64,000 bases of DNA, taken from positions 1,984,001 to 2,048,000 of the forward strand of contig BQFW01000001.1 of the NCBI GenBank assembly GCA_020891255.1, written 5' to 3'. This document shows, piece by piece, positions 2,777 through 48,289 of this stretch. How positions within the stretch are numbered: position 1 is the first letter of the stretch; the number at the start of each line of letters is the position of its first letter. Under the pieces are notes generated by a model. That model worked only from the letters and a program-made list of their open reading frames with translations, did no database searches and was not told where the DNA came from. This DNA is from Entomortierella parvispora E1425 (Eukaryota; Fungi; Mortierellomycota). The position numbers and the translations under genes were made by a program.

Positions 2777-3667
2777 ATGCCTTCCGTCATCAAGTCTATC
2801 AAGAAGTTCTTCAAGTCGGACTCGAAGTCCAAGAAGACTGCCGCTGCTGCTGCTCCCGCTCCTGCTGCTGCTAAGCCTGCCCCCGTCAAGACTGCCGCTG
2901 CTGCCGCTGCTGCCCCCGTTGCCACCGCTGCCCCCGTCTTGGAGGCTGTTGAGGTTGCCGCCCCTGCTCATCCCGAAAACACTAACACCAACCACACCTT
3001 CGAAGCACTTGTCAAGGCCGATGCCCAATTGGCTGTTCTCGCCGATCATAAGTACACCAAGACCGCTTCAGCTGAGCGTGTCGCTGCCGCCAAGGCTGGT
3101 TTGGAGGCAAACGGTTTCAAAGTCCACGTCGTCAACGGAAAGGGCGAGGCTTTTGAGACCTTGAAGAGCTTGATCCCCGCCGGCGTCTCTGTCAACAACG
3201 CCCACTCCACTACCTTGGAGGAGATTGGCTTCATCACCTACCTCAAGGGTGAAACCGCCTGGAACAACGTCCACGCCACCATTTTGGCCGAGAAGGACAT
3301 GGGCAAGCAGGCTGAGCTTCGCCGCACCATTGGATCGACTGTCGATTACTACTTGACCTCAATGTCAGCCGTTACCGAGGACGGAAAGTTGGCCCATGCT
3401 GATCTCTCTGGCTCCAAGGTTGGAGGTGTTGCCTTCGGTGCTGCCAACGTCATTGTCGTTGTTGGTACCAACAAGATTGTCAAGGATGAGGATGAGGCCT
3501 GGACCCGCACCAACGAGTTTGCCTTGGCTGCCGAGAGCGCTCGTGCCCGCGATGCCTATGGTGTCCCTGCTTCAGCCATTGTTAACTACGAGGTGATCCG
3601 CAAGGCCAACCCTTTCAACCCCAACCGCATCCAGGTCCTCTTGATCAACGATGCCCTTGGATTCTAA
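2777..3667 (+). CDS. LUD-domain protein, paralog 3, intronless, with Lys/Phe amphipathic N-terminus and Ala/Pro linker
   Basis: 296-aa ORF with strong codon bias. The core (ASAERVAAAKAGLEANGFKV...AVTEDGKLAHADLSGS...VVVGTNKIVKD...ALGF) resembles bacterial LUD/lactate-utilization C-type proteins as I recall them. Confidence 0.8.
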   Translation: MPSVIKSIKKFFKSDSKSKKTAAAAAPAPAAAKPAPVKTAAAAAAAPVATAAPVLEAVEVAAPAHPENTNTNHTFEALVKADAQLAVLADHKYTKTASAERVAAAKAGLEANGFKVHVVNGKGEAFETLKSLIPAGVSVNNAHSTTLEEIGFITYLKGETAWNNVHATILAEKDMGKQAELRRTIGSTVDYYLTSMSAVTEDGKLAHADLSGSKVGGVAFGAANVIVVVGTNKIVKDEDEAWTRTNEFALAAESARARDAYGVPASAIVNYEVIRKANPFNPNRIQVLLINDALGF

Positions 3668-18815: not shown

Positions 18816-21242
18816 CTAGTTTCGGCTTTCGTGCCTTTGATCGGGGTGAACAATAAACTCGTGAAGTCCAGAAGCAGCTGGTGCCATTGGGTAAACATGC
18901 TCGGCCTTGCATACCTTAGCCTCCATCACAACAGGACCATCATGAGCGAGGAACTCGGCCATGACACCAGGCAAATCCTGCATATTGTGAGCGCGGAGAC
19001 CTTTGATGTTCATAGCCTCAGCCAGCTTGACAAAGTCGGGGTTGAACATTTGGGTACCGGAATAACGCTCTTCGTAAAAGAGATCCTGCCATTGCTTCAC
19101 CATGCCCTGGAAGTCATTGTTCAAGATCAGGACCTTGACACCGATGTTGTACTGGGCCGCGGTAGCGAGCTCCATTCCAGTCATGCAGAAACTGGCATCG
19201 CCATCAATATCAACAACAATATGATCAGGTTTGGCTACCTTGGCACCAATTGCTGCTGGAAGACCAAATCCCATAGTGCCCAACCCTCCAGAAGTGACGA
19301 GAGAGCGGGGATGGCGCCAGCGGAAGTACTGAGCCGCCCACATCTGATGCTGACCAACCCCTGTGGTGATGATAACTTTTTCCTTCATGTTCTCAGTCTG
19401 TTTGTTCAGTTCCTGAATCACAGTCTGGGGCTTCAAGATTCCGTTGGGATCCTGGACGTGGTAGAAAGGGAAGCGCTCCTTCCACTGGCCAAGCTTGCTG
19501 AACCATTCCTTGCGCTCTGAGCTCTCGATCAAAGGCAGGAGCTTTGACAGGTTCTCAGTGACGTCACCTTCAATGGCTTCTGTGGCCTGAACCACCTTGT
19601 TGATGTTCTTTGGCGAGATTTCAAAATGAATGATTCCTCCACGGTTTTCCGAGGCGGCTTTACGCGCTTCAGGGGCAAATCGAGGCACACTGGCCGTGAC
19701 ACGGTCATCAAAACGCGCTCCCAGGGCAATGACAACATCAGCACTCTGCATGGCCAAGTTTGCATAGGCAGATCCGTGCATACCCAGCATGTGAAGCGAG
19801 CGAGGATCCATTTCGTCGAATGCACCCAATCCTTGAAGGGTAGTCGTGACAGGGATGTTTCCATTATGGGAAAGCTCCTTGAGGCGAGCTGGGCCATCAG
19901 GGTGTGACAAAACACCTTGGCCGGCGTAAATCAGAGGTCGCTTGGCTGCGTTAATCAATTGAGCAGCTCGAAGGATCTGAGGCGAGGTGACCTGTGATGC
20001 ATCTTTGGCGAGTCCTGAGAAAAAGGGAGCCTGGCTGGCGGGGGGTCTTGCGGGCACGCTTGGTGCTGCTGGGATTGCCTTTGTCAAGATCGCGGCAGTG
20101 ACGTCCTTTGGAAGATCAACCAGGACAGGGCCAGGGCGTCCAGACGTAGCAATCTCGAATGCCTCATTGATGCGTCTAGGGAGATCGGCGATATCCTTAA
20201 CCATAACGTTCCACTTTGTGCAAGCACGAGAGATACCAACAACATCGGCTTCCTGGAATGCATCCGAACCAATGGCACCGACAACAACTTGTCCTGAGAA
20301 GACGACCATAGGGGTGCCATCTGACAGGGCATCCTGCATGGCTGTGATAACGTTGGTTGCTCCGGGACCTAGAAGAAGAAAGTAATTGATAGAAGTTTCA
20401 GCCGGCTGGGAGGGTAGAGTAAAAACCTGTAAGCTATCCATTGGTTGATGACCTACCGGAGGTGACAAGGACAACTCCGGGCTTTCCACTGTAAGATTGT
20501 CATGTGCACATGCAAAGGAGAGGAGACCAATAAGAGACACAAAAGGTTAATCTGATTGCCTCCGGAGAATAAAGTGGCAACGGCATGTTCTCCAGAAAAG
20601 CACAAGCCCACTCAAAACAAAAAAAAAAGAAAAAAATTCAATCGGCGGTTCCACCGAGATAAGCGAAACCATAAAAAGGAAAGTGACAAGGATGACTTAC
20701 GTGACTCGAGCATATCCTTCAGCGGCGTGTCCTGCTCCTTGCTCAGCTCTGGGCAAGATGAATTCGAAGTGCTTTGAGTTGTAGATGGCATCAAACACAG
20801 GCAGGATGGCGCCTCCAGGGTAGCCAAAAACATGCTTCACCTCATGTCTCAACATCATTTCGTGAAAGATCTGACCACCGGACATGCCGACGAACGAGTG
20901 GTCATGGCCAGGTTTGGACGCTCTCCTAGATGGAGCCTGAGACGGATGTTCCAAGGGCTGGAGGAGAGCGGAGGATGGATCGGCGATGATGCTACGTCAG
21001 GGCGAGCTCCTATGAGTACACGTTCTTTTTCATCTTTTTCTGACGCCCGCATTAATGAAGGGAGCAGAGGCTTACCTTGGTTGAGGGGGGGCCACCTCAA
21101 CAGTTGCAGCAGAGGAGCGGAAGCGAGCTTGGGAAGCTCCTACTTTTGGCGCCCTAGAAAGACTGTAGGCCTGAGTTCTGTAGTGCCTAGTTGCAGTCGA
21201 GAGCGAACCCCGAGCTAGGCGGGCAATTGGTTGTGCTTGCAT
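18816..21242 (-). CDS. ILV2: Acetolactate synthase (AHAS) catalytic subunit, mitochondrial; multi-exon
   Basis: Presequence MQAQPIARLARGSLSTATRHYR; FGYPGGAILP, GPGATN, DAFQEAD, GARFDDRVT, TSGGLGTMGFGLP, ThDP motif GDASF...LNN, GMVKQWQ. Confidence 0.96.
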
Positions 21243-21913
21243 GGTGTCTGTGTACCGAAAGGGAAAGGGCGCAGACAGAGGCTAAGAAAGGAAAAGAGTG
21301 GGGAGGTTTGCGAACAAAAAGCAGTTCGGGGGAACACAGGAGACAAAGTAATAGACAGCGTGTTGAAGAAGGTAGAAAGAGAGAAAAAAAAAAAAAGAGA
21401 GAAGAGGAGAGGAACTTCGATCGATCAAAAGTCCAACCCCCAAGCGCCCATCTCCTCCTTGGTTGACAAAGACATTCAAGCGAGCACCGAGCACCGAGCA
21501 CCGAGAATAAGGAGCAAGAGTCCGTCTCCACATTCTGGCCATCGTTGATTTTCATGTGTAATCCAAAAAGTCACTGTCGCGGCGACAGCAACGGTGCACC
21601 AGGCAGCGCGACCCTTGACACCAATTAGTCACAACACGCGATCCAATCAGCGCCCTGTCCCGATCAGTAGGACAATATCCCTGTGGCCATGACTGCCTTT
21701 CCTCTCCGCACCCTTATCTTCCGACTCATTTGCATGACCTGAATGAGTGGGCACCTCAATTGATCAATGCACAGGCACAAAGACAAAATTACAGGACAAA
21801 CCGCCAGATCACTTTATCGGCTCTCCTCAAGGACCCACAGCATTCACTCACTCCCGCCCGCAACCACACACGATTTTGTCCTCCATGGATCCGATCGGGT
21901 GCCTCCTCGTGCC

Positions 21914-21920
21914 TATATAA
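21914..21920 (+). promoter_or_regulatory. TATA box of ILV5
   Basis: TATATAA about 170 bp upstream of ATG 22087. Confidence 0.45.
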
Positions 21921-22086
21921 CAGAGCGAAACATCCCGGACATTTTTTTTTCTTTCTTCATCACTCTCATTCTCAGTCCTCCTTTCTTCATCGATCTAAAC
22001 CTTCGATACCCAACGATCTTCTTCCAGGACCTCCCCTCTCTCCACTCCTCTATTCCACCTTTTTCATTTATCTTAATTCTCACATC

Positions 22087-23390
22087 ATGAGCTTTATTGC
22101 CCGCTCCGCTCTCCGCCAGTTGACTCGCGTCGCTGCGCCCTCTACTCGCTCCTTCTCCGTTATGGCTCGCTCTGCTGCCATCACCCAGATCCCTCGCGTT
22201 GCTGCCTGCAAGGTAAAATAGACTCCTTTGATCAACTATATCTGTGCTCTGAGATATGTGCCTGAATATTCGTAGATCTCCTTTTGCACATCACTGACTG
22301 TAATAATCTTTGATCTTTGCAGGCTGCCTTCATCCAGACCCGTGGAGTCAAGACTATGGACTTTGGTGGCACAAACGAGGTTGTCTATGAGCGCACTGAT
22401 TATCCTGCTGCTAAGCTTCAGGAGACTTTCAAGAACGATACCCTCACTGTTCTTGGCTACGGTCCCATGGGACGTGGTCAAGCCCTTAACCTCCGTGACA
22501 ATAAGTTGAATGTCATCATTGGCTCCCGCAAGGGTGCTTCTTGGGACAAGGCCGTGTCTGAGGGTTGGGTTCCCGGAAAGACTCTTTTCGAGATTAACGA
22601 GGCCTGCGACCGCGGCACTGTCATCATGAACTTGCTCTCGGACGCTGCTCAGTCCAAGCTTTGGAACGAGATCAAGCCCTACCTCACCAAGGGCAAGACT
22701 CTCTATTTCTCACACGGATTCTCTGTCATCTACTCTGAGGACACTGGCGTTATTCCCCCTAAGGACATTGATGTCATCCTTGTTGCCCCCAAGGGTTCAG
22801 GAACTACTGTTCGCAACCTTTTCCTTGAGGGTCGCGGAATCAACGGATCTGTTGCAGTTTACCAGGATGTCTCTGGCAAGGCCAAGGAACGCGCTGTTGC
22901 CCTCGGTGTCGGTGTCGGCACTGGATACTTGTACGAGACCACTTTCAAGCAGGAGGTTTACTCTGATCTCTATGGTGAGCGCGGAGTGTTGATGGGTGCT
23001 ATCCAGGGTCTCTTCGTTGCTCAGTACGAGGTCCTCCGCGCTCGCGGACACACCCCCTCTGAGGCTTTCAACGAGACCGTGGAGGAGGCCACTCAGTCGC
23101 TCTATCCCTTGATCGGCGCGAACGGCATGGACTGGATGTATGCCAATTGCTCAACCACTGCCCAGCGTGGCGCCCTTGACTGGTGGAAGAAGTTCCATGA
23201 CGCTTCCAAGCCTGTCTTTGAAGAGCTCTACGAGTCTGTCGCCAACGGAACTGAGACCAGGAGGTCCCTCACCAAGAACTCTGCACCCAACTACCGCGCC
23301 GAGTTGGAGGCCGAGCTGGCCGAGATCGCCAACCACGAGATGTGGGTCACTGGCAGGTCTGTCCGCAAGTTGAGACCCGAGAACCAGTAA
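22087..23390 (+). CDS. ILV5: Ketol-acid reductoisomerase, mitochondrial; 2 exons
   Basis: Presequence MSFIARSALRQLTR; ALNLRD, NLLSDAAQ, FSHGFS, VAPKGSG, EVYSDLYGERGVLMG, SEAFNETVEEA, CSTTAQRGA. Confidence 0.96.
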
Positions 23391-23634
23391 ATTCTACATA
23401 GCACCCTGGACATCAGTCCGCTCTCTCATCTTCCTTCATAGACGGGTGTCCACCCTGCGATACATTCGCTTGTAAATTACCATAAAAATATATCATCGAA
23501 GTGCATGCATGACTTTATTTACCGTGACGACATCAATTTTTTTTTTTTTTTTGAGAATTACGGTTGGAAATCTTCCCACAGTCCAATTCTTCGGTTCCTG
23601 TTTCCTTTATCCATCACTGCCTTCGACAATCAAC

Positions 23635-25532
23635 ATGCTGCGAACGTTCCGAACCGCCGCCAAGGTGTCACCTTCATTCGTTGCCCAGAACCGCATTCGC
23701 ATGGTCAACGGTTGGCTCGGAGCCAGAGTCAATGTACGTTTATGGTGCTGTACCTGAACACAGAATGTTATTTTACAGACGCGCTTCCAGGGCTAATGTG
23801 TATTGCTGCTCCCCTGGACATTTTAACCATGTCATTAGATGTCTACCACCGCTGCGAAGGATGCCCCTGAGGTAATTTCGTCATTTCATTACATTCAGTA
23901 GAGGCGGTTGAATTGCAAGCCTTGAACTGGACCAAAATACTCACCTCAATATGTTTTTACCAGGCCGATGTTTTGCACCGGAAGCATCTTTCCAGCAGGA
24001 CCTTTGTTCTCAACAGACCCAAGGCCCTGAACGCTTTGAACTTGAGCATGGTCCGCAACATGACCCCTCAGCTGCAGGTCAGTTCCTTGTCATTACTCAC
24101 CGATCAATCCTAAAAGCATGATCCAGGGACAGACCCGCTAATATTTTACTCGATCCACCTTCCGTTGGAATAGGCCTGGGATGCTTCGGATCTTTGCAAA
24201 GTTATTGTCATCAAAGGATCAGGAGAGAAGGCTTTTTGCGCTGGTGGAGATGTTCGTCAGGTCGTCGAGCTGGCCCAAAACAAGAAGCATGACGAAGCAT
24301 TGGCTTTCTTTGCCGAAGAGTACAAGCTGAACCACATGATCGCCACTTTGAAGACCCCATTCGTCGCCATTCTTAATGGCATCACCAGTATGCTGACAGT
24401 GACATTTAGGACATGATTTGGAGAAAAAATGTACACGATTACTGACATTTCCGCGTTTGTTTGTTTATAGTGGGTGGTGGCGTTGGACTCTCTGTTCACG
24501 CTCCTTTCAGGATTGCCACCGAGAAGACATTGTTTGCGATGCCTGAGACCAACATTGGATTGTTCCCTGATGTTGGAGGATCGTTCTTTTTGCCTCGCTT
24601 GGATGGTGAGACCGGCACATACCTTGGCCTCGTTGGCACCCGCCTTAAGGGCATTGACACTGTGTAAGAAGCTGGATGGACAAGTATACTGGAACGCTCT
24701 GTCGCAAGCACGCACTTTTACTCACGTCACATGCATGTCTGTTTGAAACTTTAGCTATGCTGGAATTGCCACCCACTACGTTCCTTCTGAGCGCTTGGTT
24801 GCATTGGAGGACCGTCTCAGCGAATTGGAAACTGACAACCACGACGTGATCAACATGGCAATTGAGGATTTCGTCAGCGAGCCTCTTCACGATCACAAGT
24901 ACGCTATCTCTGACAACCGTAACGCCATCGACCGTTGCTTCCGTTTCAACACCATCGAGGAAATTGTCGCCGCCTTGGAGCAGGAGAACACCGACTTTGC
25001 CAAGAAGACCTTGAAGACCCTTCGATCTGTCTCCCCTACTTCCCTCAAAATTACCCTCCAGCAGATCCGCGAGGGCGCACATCTTGGTATTGCCGACTGC
25101 TTCAGAATGGAACACCAATTGGCCCGCGAGTGCTTGTATGGCAATGACTTTGCTGAGGGTGTCCGTGCGTTGTTAATCGACAAGACCAACGAGCCCCACT
25201 GGCAGCCTCCCACTATCGAGGCTGTTGACCGCGAGCAGATGCTGGGACAGTACTTCAGAAACGAAAGTCCCGTGCCTCTTGAGCTCTCGAGCACGACCAC
25301 ATACAACGAGTACCCTTACAGACGTTATGGTCTCCCCACGGAGGACGAGATCCGCTCAGTTGTGACTGGTGAGGCCGAGGGCAGTGGACCTTTGCAGTTG
25401 ACTGCTGAAGAGGTCGCTGATGTTTTGGTCAAGAAGAGCGGAGGCAAGATTGGTGTGCGCGAAAAGGTCATGGAGGTCCTTTCGCGCAAGGTCAGCAAGG
25501 GCGCTGAGGGCGAGCTCAAGTGGATCGACTAG
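23635..25532 (+). CDS. HIBCH: 3-hydroxyisobutyryl-CoA hydrolase, mitochondrial (crotonase family; HIBCH/EHD3-like); multi-exon
   Basis: Presequence [10 protein letters not shown]; [76 protein letters not shown]. Confidence 0.93.
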
Positions 25533-25913
25533 AATGAAGGCGTAGAAAAAAATCCAGATACATGTACACAGTAAAATTAGTTATCCTATCCTAATTACCT
25601 TAAGTTGTTTGTGAAACGAGGCCTTATCTTGCGCCCTATGGAAGCAGTCCGACGTGAGTAATACTGGTCATGAACTCTGTCGAAGAAAACGCTCCACAGA
25701 CCAGTCAACTTACTGTTGGACTGACTCGCCTCGAGCTCTTTCATGTGCCGTTCGTTGCCCTCTCTGTGGTACAGAACCCTTCTCTCATCGCACTAGATCG
25801 ATTCGTCCCTCGGTCTGTGCCTGGTTCTTTCTTGTTTTAAAATCTACGATTCGCCTCTTGTTTTTTTCACTCTTTCCTTTCAAATCGCCCCGACCCCTCT
25901 GTTTTTTTTCCCA

Positions 25914-27080
25914 ATGTGGTCCAAATTCTTGACCACGGCCACTAAGGCTCCTCAGGTGCGTTGCCAACAACCTCTGCGACCCCCCTTCTCTTAACCAGCA
26001 ATGGAACGCAGGAACCATACTTCTAAACCGCGATCCTGACTCTTTTCCTTCTTCGTCCACGTTGTCCACAGGTTGCCTCCAATGCAGGATCGCTCATGGC
26101 AGCCACCGCCGTCCGATCGCATCGAGTCATGAACCCAGTCTTTGCGCGACAGTCTTCCTCTTCGACGTCAGCCATCTCTTACAAAAAATCGCATCCTCAC
26201 AAGCGTCACCCAGCCTTGACCTCGCAATATCTCCACCCAGCCCCACCTTCAGCAGAGGAAGCCGTCTCCAACATTCTTTACAACACACCACCCATTGGAC
26301 GAGGCCAGACCAAGCAGCGTCATATCTTCAACTGTTTGGTTCAGAACGAACCTGGAGTGCTGAGTCGTGTCTCTGGTATTCTTGCAGGACGAGGCTTCAA
26401 CATTGACTCGCTCGTGGTCGCAAAGACTGAGGTTGCAGACCTCAGTCGTATGACGATTGTTCTTCGTGGCGAATCTTCCACAATTGAACAGGCCCGGAGG
26501 CAATTGGAGGACTTGGTAAGAAAACAAGACATGGATCACCCCCCGTTTTATTTTCCTTTGGTCACAGTCTCCCTAATCTCACCTCTTTCTTTCTCTCACG
26601 ATCCATTTTCAGGTGCCAGTGTGGGCGGTCTTGGATTACACTGGATTCAAAGTGATTGAGCGCGAGTTGTTGCTGATCAAGGTCTCGATCTTGGGACCAG
26701 AGCATGTCCGGGCCCAGATGACATCTCGTCAACCCAACAACTGGCAACTGGTCCATGAGGAAGCTGAGGACGATATGACGCCCTCGAACGCGTTGCGTCA
26801 GACACACGCTCATCTCAAGTCCTTGACTGAGCTTGCGAGGCTGTTCCAAGGCAAGGTTGTGGATGTCAGCGGTGAATGTGCTGTGATCGAGTTGTCGGCC
26901 AAGCCTGATCGTGTAGATGCGTTTGTGAAGCTGGTTAAGCCCTTTGGTATCTTGGAGGCCGCAAGAAGTGGAATGATGGCCATGCCTCGTTCGCCCATCT
27001 ATGACCGCCACGAGAACGAGGACGATGAGGTCCAAGAGGAGGGATCCGGTGTGGATGCCTCGTTGTTGCCTCCTGGATAA
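25914..27080 (+). CDS. ILV6: Acetolactate synthase regulatory (small) subunit, mitochondrial; 3 exons
   Basis: ACT domain HIFNCLVQNEPGVLSRVSGILAGRGFNIDSLVV; VPVWAVLDY; RELLLIKVS; FGILEAARSGMMAMPR. Confidence 0.96.
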
Positions 27081-27539
27081 AAAAAAAAAAGCGTCAATGA
27101 ACCAACACCCTTGTAAAAAAAAAAGTACTGCTTGCTACGATAATAAAAAGTGACAACATATTCCCACAATCTAAACTTGCATCGATCTGCGTTCCAACAT
27201 GGTCGGCCAACAGCCACAAGATTGAGTCAAGACAGTAAATTTTTTGAACGATTCCTTCGCCTTGAGTGACACTGCGCCAGTGGGTGATAAGAGTCAACGG
27301 ACTGTCAGGAGAATTTGCTGAAGGAGCAACAACGACGACAGCACTACGACAGATCGCCGAGGTGATACGCCCACGGATGCCAGCAAGAGGAATATCCGGA
27401 GGCGATCTTTTGACAACAAACACCGTGTTGTGGGGATGAACCAAAAGGGCGCTAGAGAGGAATCGGTCCGTCGACAGCAGCGACGGCAGCGACGGCAGCG
27501 ACAGCGTACACACAGAGCACCGAGGTTGATCCGGAGACA

Positions 27540-27630
27540 CATAGCAGACAAGACAGACAAGACAGACACACAGACACAGACAAGGCAAACAGACAAGGCA
27601 GAGAGACAGACAGACAGACAGACAGAGGCA
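27540..27630. repeat. Compound (GACA)n/(CAGA)n microsatellite between ILV6 and the LEU2 fusion
   Basis: Runs such as gacaagacagacaagacagacacacagacacaga and gagagacagacagacagacagacaga. Confidence 0.8.
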
Positions 27631-27869
27631 GGCAGCCCAAAAAGACAGCAAACAGTCATAACTCACACAGGCCCCTTTTAGGTTTGTGATGGATGCGGGT
27701 GTGTGGTGCGAGTGCTTGCATGGGATTTGTGCGAGCGATAGGCGGATAGACTCATGTGGGTCACTGATTCTGCTCTGCCTGTGATTGTCCCCTGCTGATC
27801 CTATGCCAAATGCGGAAGAGATGCCCCGAGGTCGCCGAGACTGGCTGCATGTAGGCCGAAGGGCGAGCG

Positions 27870-27876
27870 TATAAAG
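27870..27876 (+). promoter_or_regulatory. TATA box of the LEU2-dehydratase fusion gene
   Basis: TATAAAG about 265 bp upstream of ATG 28136, followed by a long pyrimidine tract. Confidence 0.45.
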
Positions 27877-28135
27877 AGACGGCCGCTCGTCGTCGCCCTC
27901 TTCTTCTTCTTCTTCTTCTTTTTCCTTATACTCATCATCCTCTTCTCTCTCTTCCCCTCCTCTCCCCAGTCCTTCTTTCTCCTTGGCGAGCTTCTTTCTA
28001 TTTGATCTACATCTTTCTTGCTCCTCAATCCGATCTCTCTTGTTCGTTCATACCCCTTTCTGACAAAGTAACGAAACAGCTGTACACTTTTCCCACCCTC
28101 CTCCCTTTTCTAAAACAACCTCCCCCATATACACA

Positions 28136-31100
28136 ATGACCGTTACCCCCAAGCAGTCCACAGTCGTTCTCTTGCCCGGAGACGGAGTCGGTCCCGAGGT
28201 AATTGCCGAGGCCAAGCGCGTCCTTGAGCTTGTTGCCCAAGTCCGCCAACACAAGGTCCAGATCACATTCAAGGAAGAGCTGATCGGCGGTGCTTCTATC
28301 GATGCTTCTGGTAAGTCCCTGGTTTCCCTCTTCTTTTTCTTTCCCCTTGGTGCAGCAGTGGATAACAAAAGAGATGGGTGGGAGGTACAAGCGCAAGCGC
28401 AAGTCGAGTTTATTCATGCAAACGCTACGAAAAGGAGATAGCAGGCGGCGATGTGGGGCCACGAAAGAGTTTACCTTAACTAGGTGACTGACTGACACAC
28501 AATTGGCTCGGATTCTAATCTCGCTGCTCCCATTGAACCATAGGCACTGCGCTCACGGAAAAGGCTCTTGCTTCCTGCAAAGCCGCAGACGCCATTCTCC
28601 TCGGTGCAGTAGGAGGCCCCAAGTGGGCCACTGGAAACCCCAGACCTGAGCAGGGCCTCCTCGCTCTCCGAAAGAGCCTTGATCTCTATGCCAACCTCCG
28701 CCCCTGCACCTTTGCTTCGGACGCCCTCATCTCACACTCACCTCTCAAGGAATCAATCGTAAAGGGAGTCGATTTCATGATGATCCGCGAGTTGGTTGGT
28801 GGCATCTACTTTGGTGACCGCAAGGAGGCCACCGAGGAGGATGGCTATGCCTATGATACCCTTCCTTACTCAAGGGCCGAGGTTGAGCGTGTCACTCGTC
28901 TCGCCGCCGCGTTGGCTCTCCAGCACGAGCCTGCCTGGCCAATTCACTCGATCGACAAGGCAAACGTCCTTGCCTCCTCTCGTCTCTGGCGCAAGACTGT
29001 CACAGAAGTCATTGAGAAGGAGTTCCCTCAGCTCAAGGTCAACCACCACTTGGTCGACTCTGCCGCCATGTTCTTGGTCAAGAACCCTCGCGGATTGAAC
29101 GGTGTCATTTTGACTGAAAACATGTTTGGTGATATTCTCTCGGACGAGGCATCGGTCATCCCCGGATCCCTCGGACTCTTGCCCTCTGCCTCCTTGAGCG
29201 GTCTTCCTGAGAAGGGCAAACCTTGCTTGGGAGTCTATGAGCCTATTCACGGATCAGCACCCGATATCGCTGGCCAGGGAATTGCCAACCCTGTCGGTAC
29301 CATTCTTTCTGCCGCCATGTTGTTGCGCTACTCTCTTGACATGGAAGCCGAGGCCGTTGCCATTGAGGATTCTGTCCGCAAGGTCTTGGATGACGCTGAT
29401 CGTGCTGGATATGCCTTCCGCACCCGCGATTTGGGCGGTAACAAGTCCACCAAGGAGATGGGTGACAAGATCTTGGAGGTTCTCGAGAAGGAGCTCTACG
29501 GTCTTAACGCCGCGGAGGGGGCTCCCGTTTTCCGCCCCTTGGCCATTGGCCGCCCCGCTGGTCGCCGTGGAATGACCATCTCTGAAAAGATTATTGCTCA
29601 CAACGCCATTGGTCTTTCCGCACCTGGAAATGTTAAGCCTGGCGATATGGTTTGTGTTTCAGTAGACTGGACTTTGGCCTCCGAATTGACCTGGAAGGGC
29701 ATGGACAAGACTTACGACTCTATGGGCCGTCCTTCGGTCTACCGTAACGATCGTTTCTGGCTCGCCATTGATCACACTGTCGACCCCAGCATCAACCATC
29801 TCCCCAAGCCCACCGAGCTCATCAAGGCCTCGACCGACTTTGCCAAGGAGGCCAAGCTTATTGATTTCTATGGCGCCAACTACTCCATTCTTCACACCGA
29901 GTTCTACCGTGAGCGTGCTCAGCCTGGTCAGATGATCATTGGTGCCGATTCTCACTCGTGCTCTGCCGGTGCTGTTGGTGCCTTTGCTGTCGGACTCGGT
30001 GCTGCTGATGTTGTGATGCCTTTGGTCACTGGTGAGACGTGGTTCAAGGTTCCCGAGACTGTCGAAATTCGCTTTGTGAACCAGCCTCCTTTCGGTATTG
30101 GTGGAAAGGATGCCATTCTCTATGTCCTCCAGCAGCTCAAGCGCAACACTGTTGCCTTCGAGCGCTCTGTCGAATACACTGGACCTGGTCTCAAGCACTT
30201 GTCTTGCGATGCCCGCTTTGCCTTGTCCAACATGGCCACTGAGTTTGGTGGTATTGCTGGTGTGTGCGAGGCTGATGAGACTACTGCCGCCTACATTGCC
30301 AAGCGCAAGAACCCTCAGCACAAGAACTCTGCCCTGTACTTCAAGGCCGATGAGGATGCTGAGTATGCCGAGACCCACATTATCGATTTGTCCAAGGTTG
30401 AATCTTTGGTCGCCTTGTACCCCGATCCCGATAACTGCGTCGATGTGGATGCCTGCGCCGGAACCAAGCTCGATGGATGCTTCATTGGAGCCTGCACAAC
30501 TGCCGAAGAGGATTTGATTTTGGCTGCTTTGGTCTTGGAGGCTGGTCTCAAGAAGGGTCTCGTCCCTGCTTTGGGAGGCAAGCGTAAGGTTACCCCTGGA
30601 TCCGTCCCAATTGTTGCCAAGCTCCGTCGCTTGGGATTGCTCAAGATCTACGAGCAGGCTGGTTTCGAGATTGGTGCTCCTGGATGCTCTTACTGCATTG
30701 CTGTCGCTGCCGATCAGGCTGGTGAGGGTGAGGTTTGGTTGTCTTCTCAGAACCGTAACTTCCGTAACCGCATGGGCAAGGGTGCCATCGGTAACTTGGC
30801 CTCGGCCGCCACTGTCGCTGCTTCTGCCTTTGATATGAAGATTCGCAACCCTCGCGATCTTTTGGACAGCATTGACCGCGTTCGTTACGAGGAGATGTTG
30901 GAGCAGTGGATTGAGAAGGGCAAGCCTGTCGTCTACTCTGAGCCCGCTCCCATCCTTTACAACGCCGCCACCGACAGCGGTTCCCTCCCTGCCCCTCCTC
31001 CTTCGTTCTCGGCCACCATCACTGGACGCGTCCAGCGCTTTGAGGACAACATTGATACCGATGCCATCATCCCCGCCCAATTCATGCCCGGAACTTCAGA

Positions 31101-31611
31101 CAAGGACTTGGGTACCCACGCTTTCCAGTTTGTTAAGCCCGAATTCAGGGAGTTGGCCGCTCAGGGTTACGACATTGTGGTCGGAGGCAGTGGTTTTGGA
31201 TCTGGTTCGTCTCGTGAGGAGGCTCCTCGTGCTCTTTTGGGTGCTGGCATTAAGGCCGTCATTGCCAAGTCGTACGCTTTCATCTATGCCCGTAACCAGC
31301 CCAACATGTCGTTGCTCGGAATCACCATCGAGGACGAGTCCTTCTATGAGCATGCTCAGGAGGGAGCTGAGATCTCGATTGATGTCAAGGAGCGCAAGGT
31401 GCACTGCGGCGGTCAGGTCTATCCCTTTGGTTTGTCTTTGATGGAGGAGCGTCTCTTGGCCGGAGGTGGTGTCACTGAGATGTACAAGACCTACGGCAAG
31501 CAGTTGTTCCGTGTCGCCACTGCTCCCGAGGCCAAGTCCAGCTCATGCGGAACTGAAGTCAAGGCTGCCTCCAAGAGCAACTGCGGCGATGACAGCGAAC
31601 TCGCCTGGTAA
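28136..31611 (+). CDS. LEU2: Fusion protein of 1080 aa: 3-isopropylmalate dehydrogenase + aconitase-family (isopropylmalate-dehydratase-like) large and small subunits; exons 28136-28310, 28544-31611
   Basis: IPMDH motifs [68 protein letters not shown]. The same frame continues without a stop into [53 protein letters not shown]. Confidence 0.92.
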
Positions 31612-31752
31612 ACCAACATCATTTGCAAGCATTCATAAACCCAACTCAATAAATGTATATAATTGTCATTGTTATAAAAACGCGAGCGTCATGGTATTGT
31701 AAAAAAAAAAGGTGATGTTGAAAAGCTAAGAGGGCGAAGAATTATTTTCTGT

Positions 31753-44969: not shown

Positions 44970-47900
44970 TTACAACTGCAAAGAGTCGACTACGGACTGA
45001 CAGCGAGTACAGAGAGTGTCCTGGGCAGGCGATACGAGGCTCCAGCAGCGGGGGCACTTGTGCATTGGGGATCGGCGTACAACCAGACGGCAAGATCCAA
45101 CTTTTGGCATCTCGACATCACGAGTAAAGGAGACCGCTTCACCCTCCGTCGCGGTATTGGACGTGTTAGGGGCTACCCTTGTAACAGTGACGGAAGAGGT
45201 GATGAAGAGCTTTGCAAAGTCATCTGCGTAGCTGTCAACAGTGTCAGCCAGAGTGTTCTCCTCTTTGTCGTTCTTTTCCTTGAGCTGGACCTCAACAGTG
45301 GCTTCGGCAGAGGGTCCAATGAGCTTTGCAGCACGGGCTTGCTCCAACAGCTGGTTGACTTCGGAGCGAAGCTGCTTCACTACTAGGAACTCTTCGCGCA
45401 AAGTAACATTGTTCCAAGTCTCAGGCGCATCTAGCCAACCAGCGCGGAAGACGGATGGCTGAGGATCATTGAAGCAATGGCTGTAGTTTTCGTACACTTC
45501 CTCCGCAAAGTGAGGTGCCAATGGAGCAATGCTCTTGTTGAAAGCAGTTAATACCTAAAAGAAGGAAGGAGTGCGTATGATTAGTGATGAGAAGGGCAAA
45601 ACGATCAAGTAAATATGAACTAAATTAGAAAATAGAAGAAAAAAAATACATACATGGAAGAGGACAGTCTGGATGCCACGGCGCTTCTCACTGTTTTCAG
45701 TCTCATTGTAAAGGGTATCTTTGATCACGTCCAAGTAGAATGAGGACAAGGTCGTGCTCGTAAGGAACTGTAGTTGAGTGAAGACTGGAGTCAACAAAAG
45801 AAGAAAGCAGGCAGTCAGCATCGATCGCCATAACGAACCATTCCAAAGTCAACATTATCATCGAATTGGAAGTCTACCTTTGTTGTACGCGAACTCATCG
45901 TAGGCCGCGTTCACACTCTTGCAGAATTGGTATACTTCAGAAAGCATGAATTTGTCTAACCGCGTCAAGTCCTCGTAGGGTACAGCCTGGGACTCATGGA
46001 ACCCATTCAAATTGCCAAGCATGAACCGAGCCGTTGTTCTGAACTTGCGCAAGCCTTCTGCGACTTGCGCCAAGATGGTCTTTCCGATGGCAATGTCCTT
46101 GGTGTACTCGGAGGAGGCTGCCCAGAGTCGGAGGACGTCCAATCCATATGCGGGATCCTTTTGGACGTTCTTGCCTCCATAGATGACTACGGCTGGGTCT
46201 ACAGTGTTGCCGAGCGATTTGCTCTGCTTAAGACCCTTGGCATCGAGCAAGAAACCGTGGGTGATCAATGTTCCGAAAGGCGCTTTGCCAGTCAGAGCCA
46301 CAGAAGTCAGAAGTGAGGACTGGAACCAACCGCGATGCTGATCACTGCCCTCACAATATACATCTGCGACAAATGGCAAATGAGGCCGAGGCATCTTCTC
46401 TTCGATCATGGTCCAGCTCGTACCGCTGTCAAACCAGACATCCATGGTGTCAGTACCACGACGATACGTCTTTCCATTGTTTCTGTACTGAGGTGCCAGC
46501 AATTCCTCCGTGGTCATGCTCCACCAAGCATTAGTGCCATGCTCCTTGACAGTATCCACAATGTGCTGGACGGACTCCTTAGTCAAAAGCGGCTCGTCCG
46601 TGTCAACCTCATACAGGACAGGGATAGGTACGCCCCAAGAGCGTTGACGTGAGATGCACCATTCGCTTCGGGAAAGCACAAAGCCCTCCAGACGGCGTCT
46701 GGCGCCTTCAGGTACAATCTTCACAGTCTCGATCGCCTTAAGGGCGTCCTCCTTGATGGTGCCAACATTCGCAAACCATTGCGAGGTGGCGCGCAAGATG
46801 ATGGGCTTCTTGGTTCTCCAGTCGTAGGGATACTTGTGCACATAGGCTTGTTCCTGGATCAGAGTGCCTTTGGCCTGCAACATCTCCAAGACTTTGGTCG
46901 TACCTTCGCCCTGAACATTCAGGCCCTCCAATTCGGGACCTGCCTCGGCTGTAAAGTCGCCGACATTGTTTACTGGGCAGAAGGCCTCAATGCCCAGGGG
47001 GAAACAGGCCTTGTAGTCGTCCATGCCATGACCGGGGGCTGTGTGAACCAGACCGGATCCAGAGTCCGAGGTGACATAGTCCGCAGTAATGAAGGGTAAT
47101 GACTCTGCAGTCAATGGATGTTGGTACCGAGTGCCCATCAACTCTTGTCCAGTGATCTGTCCAAGAAGTTCCAGGGTTGCAGCGTCGCCATCCTTGGGAG
47201 TGAATCGCTTTTGCATTTCTTCCATTCGCTCTGTTGCTGCGAGGTATACAGTCGAGGCGTCAGATGCTGTGCTGGAGCGGAATAACGTGTAGTTCATTCG
47301 AGGGTGGACAGCTACACATCTGTTGGCTGGTAATGTCCAAGGTGTGGTGGTCCATACTACAGCCTGTAATGATGCACCAGCGGGGGCTACTGCGGCTAAT
47401 GCATTGGCTAAAAGAACAAGACATGGAGGTATTAGAGCCTATTACTTTTGTACGCTTGTATTGACCATGTCGTACATTTGCTCCACTTACAAGGCTGGTC
47501 CAAGTAAAAAGCTACCCACGCAGATCGACTTTTGTGATCGTCCTTGTACTCGAGCTCTGATTCTGCGAGCGCAGTTCTGGACGAAGGAGACCAGTAGACG
47601 GGCTTGTTGGCACGGTAGATCAGACCTTTGCTCATCATCCCATAAAAGACGTTCAATTGACGGGTCTCAAAGTCCTTGTGCATTGTCAAGTATCCATTAT
47701 CCCAATCACCCATGACACCGTAGGAGAAGAATTCGCTGCGCTGGGCGTCTACGGCCGCTTGGGCCGTTGCCTGAGCGACCTCACGGACTTGAGAGGGACT
47801 GAGGTTGGAACGATCAGTGACCTTGAGTTCGGCAAGAGCCTTAAGCTCAATGGGCAACCCGTGACAATCCCAGCCAGGGCGATAACTAAGCAAGATGACA

Positions 47901-48289
47901 AAGCAAAGTATGTGTATGAGTCGCTGAATGAGACGAAGAATCAAAAGCGAGTGCATGCGAGGAATGGATTCTTACTCGACTTTGAAGCCTGCCATGACTT
48001 TCTGGCGGTTGACAAAGTCCTTGAGGAGTTTGTTGAGGGCATGTCCGAGATGGAGATGGCCGTTGGCATAGGGTGGGCCATCGTGGAGGACAAAGAGGTC
48101 TCCTTTGTTGTTCTCGCGTTGCCAAGCATAGAGATCTGTGGTGCAACGGTCGCGGAAGAGATGCTCACGCGCTGCTGCATCGGCGCGAAGAGGAAAATTG
48201 GTAGCTGGGAGCAAGAGAGTAGGGGCGTATTTCTGATCAGGCTTTTCTTTTTGAGCCCTCTTGGGCTTTGTTGCGGTGGACATGGCCAT
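44970..48289 (-). CDS. ISM1: Isoleucyl-tRNA synthetase, bacterial/mitochondrial type; multi-exon
   Basis: FVLHDGPPYANGHLHLGHALNK (HIGH), PGWDCHGLPIE, WTTTP, VHTAPGHG, EWCISRQRSWGVPIP, EGSDQHRGWF, KQSKSLGN (KMSKS-like), C-terminal KCPRCW zinc finger. Confidence 0.93.

Follow-up and report, generated by a model that had tools for sequence, protein, structure and literature searches.

Five adjacent genes, four of them for branched-chain amino acid (BCAA) synthesis, occupy positions 18816-31611 of the 64,000-nt stretch of Entomortierella parvispora E1425 analyzed here (the window; contig BQFW01000001.1, positions 1,984,001 to 2,048,000). As recognized with Pfam and NCBIfam models, they are ILV2 on the minus strand, ILV5, a gene of the ECH_2/3-hydroxyisobutyryl-CoA hydrolase (HIBCH) family, ILV6 and a gene for a LeuB-LeuC-LeuD fusion protein. 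An earlier note, written from the DNA sequence alone, had placed these five consecutive genes here, and Pfam, NCBIfam and the orthologous loci confirm the placement. The cluster is real, non-random and eukaryotic. It is fairly probable that it represents a native, duplicated primary-metabolism cluster of Mortierellaceae, which has been kept by selection and was built from divergent gene pairs. It would supply four of the roughly nine activities for the synthesis of valine, isoleucine and leucine.

Conservation of the block in Mortierellaceae

Microsynteny, proposed in the earlier note as a check, was found for all five genes in one related species and for four of them in another, with partial pairs in Umbelopsis, Calcarisporiella and a chytrid (see below). 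In two assemblies of Mortierella sp. GBAus27b the same five genes are present in identical order and orientation, and no extra gene is called among the five orthologues. In Actinomortierella ambigua the order is ILV2(−), ILV5(+), ILV6(−), fusion(+); the ECH gene is lacking and ILV6 is inverted relative to the window. Both maps were confirmed by tblastn with the window proteins. The upstream neighbor is SF3A2 in the window, Pet100 in GBAus27b and Kelch in Actinomortierella, and the downstream neighbor is common only to the window and GBAus27b. Because the neighbors differ among the genera, the block has outlasted its surroundings. This linkage beyond the surrounding synteny is observed at the GBAus27b and Actinomortierella loci. 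The spacer DNA is no longer alignable between genera.

At least three adjacent, non-homologous genes of one pathway, the mark of a primary-metabolism cluster in eukaryotes, are present in the block. For an assumed genome of 8,000-16,000 genes, 10-16 of them in the BCAA pathway, one would expect 1e-8 to 6e-7 (about 1e-7) five-gene windows that hold four or more pathway genes. A simple possibility is that a single chance rearrangement in the ancestor of Mortierellaceae joined the genes, that there has been too little time to disperse them, and that the linkage is functionless. The family is indeed fairly young, as its proteins are 88-94% identical; transcriptional regulation in Mortierella alpina is weak, and no promoter motif is held in common. 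However, the chance expectation is about 1e-7, and the four genes are still together although both the flanks and the internal order were rearranged. Moreover, intergenic DNA is already unalignable between genera, and Umbelopsis and Calcarisporiella show these pairs again. An accident without function is therefore quite unlikely.

An artefact, either by misassembly or by bacterial contamination, can practically be disregarded. Misassembly, which the earlier note had named as a possible refutation, is excluded by the same block in independent assemblies of other species. As that note had argued, the genes are not bacterial: they contain spliceosomal introns, one of which is confirmed in RNA-derived contigs, four of them encode presequence-like N-termini, and their nearest relatives are fungal. 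The best matches of the window proteins are from Entomortierella, Linnemannia and Mortierella at 88-94% identity, which indicates a Mortierella-type eukaryotic genome.

Genes of the block and their products

Gene limits and exons were deduced from tblastn/tblastx against orthologous loci and from reading of the N-termini, and for the fusion intron also from metatranscriptome contigs. ILV2, for the catalytic (large) subunit of acetohydroxyacid synthase (AHAS), extends over 18816-21242 on the minus strand, with the start codon at 21242, 3 exons and a product of ~680 aa. It contains TPP_enzyme_N/M/C; the region 18816-20540(−) scores 622 bits with TIGR00118 (cut-off 538), and in PDB the product matches fungal AHAS 6wo1_A (E = 8e-220) and yeast Ilv2 (1jsc, E = 2e-204). 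Its introns, located by tblastx against Mortierella sp. GBAus27b, Actinomortierella ambigua and Umbelopsis, lie at roughly 21100-20940 and 20700-20480; the splice sites are approximate, with 18 frame-keeping GT..AG solutions remaining. A spacer of 844 bp (21243-22086), presumed to be a bidirectional promoter, separates ILV2 from the divergent ILV5. The same divergent pair is found in Mortierella sp. GBAus27b, Actinomortierella and Umbelopsis. ILV5, for ketol-acid reductoisomerase (KARI), covers 22087-23390 on the plus strand (~397 aa, 2 exons, intron within 22216-22313). It carries KARI_N and KARI_C, and the region 22317-23390(+) reaches 336 bits with TIGR00465 (cut-off 226).

ILV6, for the regulatory (small) subunit of AHAS, is located at 26096-27080 on the plus strand in 2 exons (26096-~26520 and ~26613-27080). 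ACT_AHAS_ss and ALS_ss_C are recognized, TIGR00119 is matched on both exons, and the PDB matches are 6wo1_B (2e-40) and yeast 6u9d_C (1.5e-33). ILV2 and ILV6 together have the composition of an AHAS holoenzyme, namely a three-domain thiamine diphosphate-dependent catalytic subunit plus an ACT/ALS_ss_C regulatory subunit. The spacer of 1055 bp between ILV6 and the fusion gene (27081-28135) is unconserved in Mortierella sp. GBAus27b or Actinomortierella by blastn. Open reading frames (ORFs) in the spacers, e.g. 27094-27666(−), are without a Pfam match and unconserved.

The fusion gene lies at 28136-31611 on the plus strand and encodes 1080 aa in exon 1 (28136-28309) and exon 2 (28543-31611), separated by a GT..AG intron (28310-28542). 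The spliced joint 28309/28543 is present in two soil metatranscriptome contigs from relatives. Iso_dh, Aconitase and Aconitase_C are found in a single open frame (Pfam region 28777-31611(+)): the 3-isopropylmalate dehydrogenase (IPMDH) part reaches to ~29470 and is followed by a linker, a LeuC-like part (29569-~30980), a LeuD-like part (~31015-31440) and a tail ending in SELAW. A protein search returned more than 100 full-length orthologues of ~1080 aa. A read-through of two genes was considered and rejected on account of the single open frame and these orthologues.

The N-terminal half is clearly assigned by its sequence to 3-isopropylmalate dehydrogenase (LeuB/LEU2). In PDB it matches IPMDH at 1.5e-94, homoisocitrate dehydrogenase at 3e-38 and tartrate dehydrogenase at 5e-31, and the top NCBIfam model of the Iso_dh type is TIGR00169 leuB. 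An Arg/Tyr/Lys/Asp set and an E-x-G-L-L loop are invariant in an alignment of orthologues (A1); we take these to include the substrate and metal residues of IPMDH. For the dehydratase half, the nearest solved structures are LeuC/LeuD and HacA/HacB of Methanocaldococcus jannaschii (4nqy, 8.5e-59). It scores 315 bits with PRK00402 as against 143 bits with the bacterial-type leuC model TIGR00170, and no NCBIfam model attains its cut-off. The C...CxxC cysteines (C709, C773, C776), D-S-H and S-S-Q-N-R-N-F are all invariant in A1. In homoaconitase the substrate loop of the small subunit reads YLRT and carries an Arg. The corresponding loop here is F-M-P-G; because the Arg is absent, it fits a hydrophobic substrate such as isopropylmalate. 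An assignment of the fusion to LYS12-LYS4 of the lysine pathway was rejected, since the IPMDH score is far above that of homoisocitrate dehydrogenase and the loop is without the homoaconitase Arg.

Compared with canonical fungal LEU2 and LEU1, the fusion has a clear LeuB half and shares the C-terminal Trp of Leu1, whereas its dehydratase half is of the archaeal LeuC/LeuD-HacA/B type and both enzymes are joined in one chain. The terminal Trp (...SELAW) is invariant among the 16 orthologues/species of A1. A C-terminal Trp tripeptide has been defined experimentally as the recognition signal of fungal Leu1 for cytosolic Fe-S assembly (CIA), and it is absent in bacterial and organellar orthologues (bioRxiv 10.1101/2023.05.19.541488). 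In addition, the fusion has no presequence, as the dinucleotide-binding motif of IPMDH begins after six or seven residues, likewise in the orthologues. Because of the missing presequence and the conserved terminal Trp, the fusion is probably cytosolic. In contrast, presequence-like N-termini, rich in Arg/Ser and free of acidic residues, were seen in ILV2 (MQAQPIARLARG...), ILV5 (MSFIARSALRQ...), the ECH gene product and ILV6. The mitochondrial presequences claimed in the earlier note are supported for these four and do not apply to the fusion, which starts directly at the IPMDH fold. Predictions for M. alpina, in which IlvB and IlvE are mitochondrial and LeuB1 is not (PMC8880518), agree with those for the window proteins. 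The cluster would then encode one Fe-S enzyme of the cytosol next to three or four proteins of the mitochondria.

The pathway may then be arranged as follows. In mitochondria, AHAS (Ilv2 with the valine-sensing Ilv6) would form acetolactate or acetohydroxybutyrate, which KARI would reduce. Dihydroxyacid dehydratase (DHAD) and isopropylmalate synthase (IPMS), encoded elsewhere, would lead to 2-isopropylmalate. In the cytosol, the fusion would isomerize 2-isopropylmalate and then carry out the oxidative decarboxylation to 2-oxoisocaproate, both steps on one chain. As the earlier note had stated, no DHAD, IPMS or aminotransferase is encoded among the window ORFs of at least 150 aa, nearly all of which were scanned.

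The fusion is widespread: it was found in Mortierellaceae, Glomeromycota, Endogonales, Calcarisporiella, Zoopagomycota, chytrids, Blastocladiomycota, Neolecta, some Fusarium and Penicillium, a nucleariid and Physarum, and no protein of Mucorales is among the fusion matches listed. Six longer proteins of 1340-1573 aa (P0093, P0096-P0098, P0101 and P0102) have HMGL-like and LeuA (IPMS)-type domains ahead of Iso_dh, Aconitase and Aconitase_C. Their sources are a EukProt transcriptome and unlabelled assemblies of ENA and Logan. Each chain joins three enzymes that follow one another in the leucine pathway, equivalent to four bacterial gene products, and keeps to the operon order leuA-B-C-D. In a related isolate (X3), a 22.8-kb contig is ~98% identical to the fusion gene (window 27937-31658 compared) and unlike the window from ~200 bp upstream of the ATG and from 47 bp past the stop; the sole X3 contig on ILV2/ILV5 is <90% alike. 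The break may reflect another genomic neighborhood of the gene in X3, or may stem from filtering by the tool.

The ECH_2 gene, of the 3-hydroxyisobutyryl-CoA hydrolase / mS47 (Ehd3) type, covers 23635-25532 on the plus strand, 244 bp after ILV5 and 563 bp before ILV6. It has at least five exons (about 23635-23736, 23913-24086, 24171-24398, 24467-24670 and 24753-25532). Pfam ECH_2 (7e-42) and PRK05617 match in the region 24795-25532(+). The best solved relative is chain 6yw5_88 of the N. crassa mitoribosome small subunit (1.5e-44), ahead of human HIBCH 3bpt (4.4e-36), and this match covers a C-terminal extension which is missing in human HIBCH. The yeast chain 8d8l_8 goes by two names, 3-hydroxyisobutyryl-CoA hydrolase and mS47. 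By these matches the gene is assigned to the fungal Ehd3/mS47 orthologues; it may or may not have a role in valine catabolism.

Membership of this gene in a BCAA cluster would demand conserved linkage, which was not found. The gene is present in the Mortierella sp. GBAus27b cluster and missing from that of Actinomortierella, where tblastn left no trace of it. Because of this absence it is treated as a passenger, which it probably is. The earlier note had counted it as a valine-catabolic member of the cluster; its ECH_2 fold bears out the family, but the Actinomortierella cluster does without it and its closest solved relatives are mS47/Ehd3. Sited among BCAA genes, it is a candidate for moonlighting.

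The other genes of the window are unrelated to the pathway and include WDR3/Utp12, an RRM protein, SF3A2, bestrophin, PPR, heme o synthase, HIG1, LYR, IleRS, ARMT1, OSBP and a GDSL lipase, among others. A LUD-domain gene (LutC/YkgG-type) is located at 2777-3667. The isoleucyl-tRNA synthetase, of the bacterial/mitochondrial type, is encoded ~13 kb downstream of the block (44970-48000(−); TIGR00392 ileS, 456 and 141 bits on two exons). It was rejected as a cluster member, since several unrelated genes intervene and Mortierella sp. GBAus27b has a different downstream flank; its position near the ilv-leu genes is probably a coincidence.

Linked pairs in other fungi and the origin of the cluster

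Outside Mortierellaceae, loci centered on the KARI gene or on the fusion gene were inspected. At the KARI-centered locus of Umbelopsis isabellina, ILV2(−) and ILV5(+) are head-to-head, as in the window. Calcarisporiella thermophila has ILV6(−) head-to-head with the fusion gene (+) at its fusion-centered locus, and a second ILV6(−) head-to-head with ILV5(+) at its KARI-centered locus. No ilv neighbor was found at the fusion-centered loci of Geosiphon, Gigaspora, Neoconidiobolus and the chytrid Entophlyctis, and KARI stands without a pathway neighbor at the KARI-centered loci of Phycomyces and Gigaspora; a tblastn search of these negative loci gave no ilv or leu gene that the annotation had missed. 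An adjacent pathway gene is present at 3 of the 9 loci that were unselected for linkage (P about 1e-6). In the chytrid Polyrhizophydium stewartii (L012, 10001-13556), ILV6 and ILV5 are adjacent on the same strand and annotated as one protein of 563 aa (P0238). Because the ILV6 frame meets a stop ~40 codons beyond its last domain, these are probably two genes merged in the annotation. This locus was picked for its merged model and, being biased, was left out of the linkage count.

Near the Calcarisporiella ILV6/fusion pair, at a distance of ~1 kb, are two adjacent gene models with BCDHK_Adom3 and HATPase_c (L005, 4762-6719), of the branched-chain keto-acid or pyruvate dehydrogenase kinase type. 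They may be a further BCAA-related neighbor.

The Actinomortierella arrangement consists of two head-to-head pairs side by side, and shares the ILV6/fusion pair with Calcarisporiella and the ILV2/ILV5 pair with Umbelopsis. Because its two pairs recur in these fungi, we infer that this order is the older state. A native cluster built from divergent pairs would then have arisen from ILV2/ILV5 and, ancestrally, ILV6/fusion, with their short spacers acting as bidirectional promoters that hold the linkage. Precedents for such promoters are GAL1-GAL10 and niiA-niaD. In the lineage of the window, ILV6 would have been inverted, and the HIBCH/mS47 gene would have come between ILV5 and ILV6.

KARI and the fusion have their closest relatives in other early-diverging fungi. 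In a KARI tree, Mortierellaceae form a single clade (100/100) in which Actinomortierella is sister to all others, and the core genera hold at least two paralogue lineages; the two copies of M. antarctica, for example, fall into different clades. A native origin of the cluster genes is supported by these relationships. The earlier note had spoken of a cluster assembled from native genes. The genes do appear native, but they may have descended from older linked pairs rather than been assembled; ILV2/ILV5 and ILV6/fusion pairs also occur in Mucoromycotina.

In M. alpina, two partially duplicated clusters have been reported, ilvB-ilvF1-ilvE1 and ilvF2-ilvE2-leuB1 (Sonnabend, Seiler and Gressler 2022, J Fungi 8:196, PMC8880518). 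A duplication of the cluster within core Mortierellaceae would account for these two partial clusters. The contigs from four related isolates (X3, X5, X6 and X8; window 20300-26200 compared) include an orthologous and a paralogous one. The latter matches only ILV2 exon 2 and ILV5, at ~85% nucleotide identity and with a shorter spacer (989 nt), and so indicates a paralogous ILV2-ILV5 pair.

The duplication also bears on whether the window paralogues are dedicated to the supply of Leu/Val-rich lipopeptides or lipid synthesis, with housekeeping left to another locus. The cluster genes are duplicated in core Mortierellaceae, and PMC8880518 describes Leu-rich malpinins and a high BCAA turnover in M. 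alpina. However, no nonribosomal peptide synthetase or tailoring gene was found in the window, and the catalytic residues are all conserved. Furthermore, LEU2 has just one strong homologue in M. alpina, the fusion-type LeuB1 (1.4e-112 vs 1.8e-36 for LeuB2), so that the locus must serve primary leucine synthesis. We regard a dedicated supply function as very unlikely.

The gene content resembles that of prokaryotic ilvBNC-leuABCD operons, of which the ilv-leu operon of Bacillus subtilis is an example. In metagenome loci of this type (L016, L039, L067), the same set stands side by side, i.e. the large and small subunits of AHAS, KARI, IPMDH and the large and small subunits of isopropylmalate isomerase. 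The prokaryotic operons are co-directional, polycistronic and intronless and usually include leuA, whereas in the fungal locus every gene starts on its own, introns and targeting signals are present, ILV2 points away from the others, and a single polypeptide comprises LeuB, LeuC and LeuD. The term operon-like, used in the earlier note, is not supported by the sequence: the genes are not co-directional, as ILV2 lies on the other strand, all of them begin with a separate ATG, and the spacers measure 244-1055 bp.

One may still ask whether an ancestral ilvB-ilvN-ilvC-leu(A)BCD locus, fungal or older, gave rise to the fusion and left the cluster and the scattered pairs behind as its remnants. A metagenome scan for eukaryotic fusion loci returned 80 loci, at least 79 of which look prokaryotic, many with leu or ilv-leu operons. 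In favor of a relic, the fungal gene content equals the prokaryotic operon minus leuA; the metagenome contigs often show ilvB-ilvN-ilvC-(gap)-leuC-leuD-leuB on one strand, and L016 has a contiguous ilvB-ilvN-ilvC-leuB-leuC-leuD. With occurrences in fungi, a nucleariid and Physarum, the fusion is old and widely distributed, the proteins of 1340-1573 aa show the order leuA-B-C-D, and different pairs are linked in distant fungal lineages. However, the fungal genes are head-to-head rather than co-directional, the partner of ILV5 varies by lineage (ILV2 or ILV6), linkage is missing from most sampled lineages, and the prokaryotic loci mostly have leuC-leuD-leuB and not B-C-D. Retention for >1 billion years without an operon mechanism is improbable in itself. 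Such a relic is on balance unlikely; if it were real, the footprint of an operon would be preserved in eukaryotic chromosomes.

Regulation, comparison with known clusters and significance

Within the cluster, only one site for TGASTCA (Gcn4/AP-1-type) was found, at 27223 in the ILV6/fusion spacer. In the whole window there are 4 matches, vs a mean of 14.2 (sd 3.7) in shuffled sequences, i.e. the motif is depleted. By k-mer comparison, nothing of at least 8 nt is common to the ILV2/ILV5 and fusion promoters.

Several observations weigh against maintenance of a native cluster by selection through shared promoters. First, no motif is common to the four spacers in three species, and k-mers gave only purine/pyrimidine tracts. 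Secondly, in M. alpina the BCAA genes change by at most about 4-fold in quantitative reverse transcription PCR and unlinked genes respond alike, and basal fungi are without a Leu3 homologue or Leu3 sites (PMC8880518). Co-regulation specific to the cluster is not supported by these expression data. Thirdly, ILV6 and the fusion gene of the window are in tandem, so the supposed shared ILV6/fusion promoter is gone, and the linkage is still kept. Moreover, the majority of the sampled loci outside Mortierellaceae are unlinked. Finally, a canonical LEU1-type isomerase is encoded at another place in M. alpina (PMC8880518), which leaves the function of the fused isomerase half in doubt.

The M. alpina clusters belong to the same fungal family and comprise the same gene families, with ILV3, ILV1, IPMS, the LEU1-type isomerase and BAT located elsewhere in that genome (PMC8880518). 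By the description in that paper, the window locus differs in that it unites ILV2, ILV5, ILV6 and a LeuB-type gene, plus the HIBCH/mS47 gene. In the paper, LeuB1 figures as a plain dehydrogenase, the word 'fusion' is absent, and neither the HIBCH/mS47 gene nor any further species is mentioned. It was the only report found in literature searches for the cluster or the fusion. The earlier note had called the cluster apparently undescribed and had named prior documentation as a ground for refutation. This ground applies in part, as the M. alpina clusters were already known from one paragraph of the paper; what is new is the wider pattern of pairwise linkage and the operon-like gene content.

Clusters of primary metabolism in other fungi provide a further comparison. 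In GAL1-GAL10-GAL7, DAL and niiA-niaD, genes of the same pathway are adjacent, often head-to-head with a shared promoter, and the clusters are patchy and rearranged among relatives. In these respects they resemble the present cluster; however, they are mostly catabolic or assimilatory and strongly inducible, whereas the window cluster is anabolic, is under weak control to judge from the M. alpina data, and would span two compartments. In eukaryotes, to our knowledge, the genes of anabolic amino-acid pathways hardly ever form clusters. The earlier note had called the present genes unlinked in S. cerevisiae, which is not strictly true, since ILV6 (YCL009C) and LEU2 (YCL018W) are ~13 kb apart on chromosome III.

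Taken together, the head-to-head pairs in Umbelopsis and Calcarisporiella, the chytrid ILV6-ILV5 and the ilv-leu gene content form a data set for deciding between assembly and relic origin. The findings have practical sides as well: AHAS and KARI serve as targets of herbicides and antifungals; in Mortierella, which is used industrially for lipid production, BCAA flux feeds lipids and lipopeptides; and a compact locus with LeuBCD as a single chain lends itself to use as an engineering unit. Conserved, duplicated and rearranged in Mortierellaceae, and never dispersed, the cluster offers a case for studying why linkage persists under weak transcriptional control.

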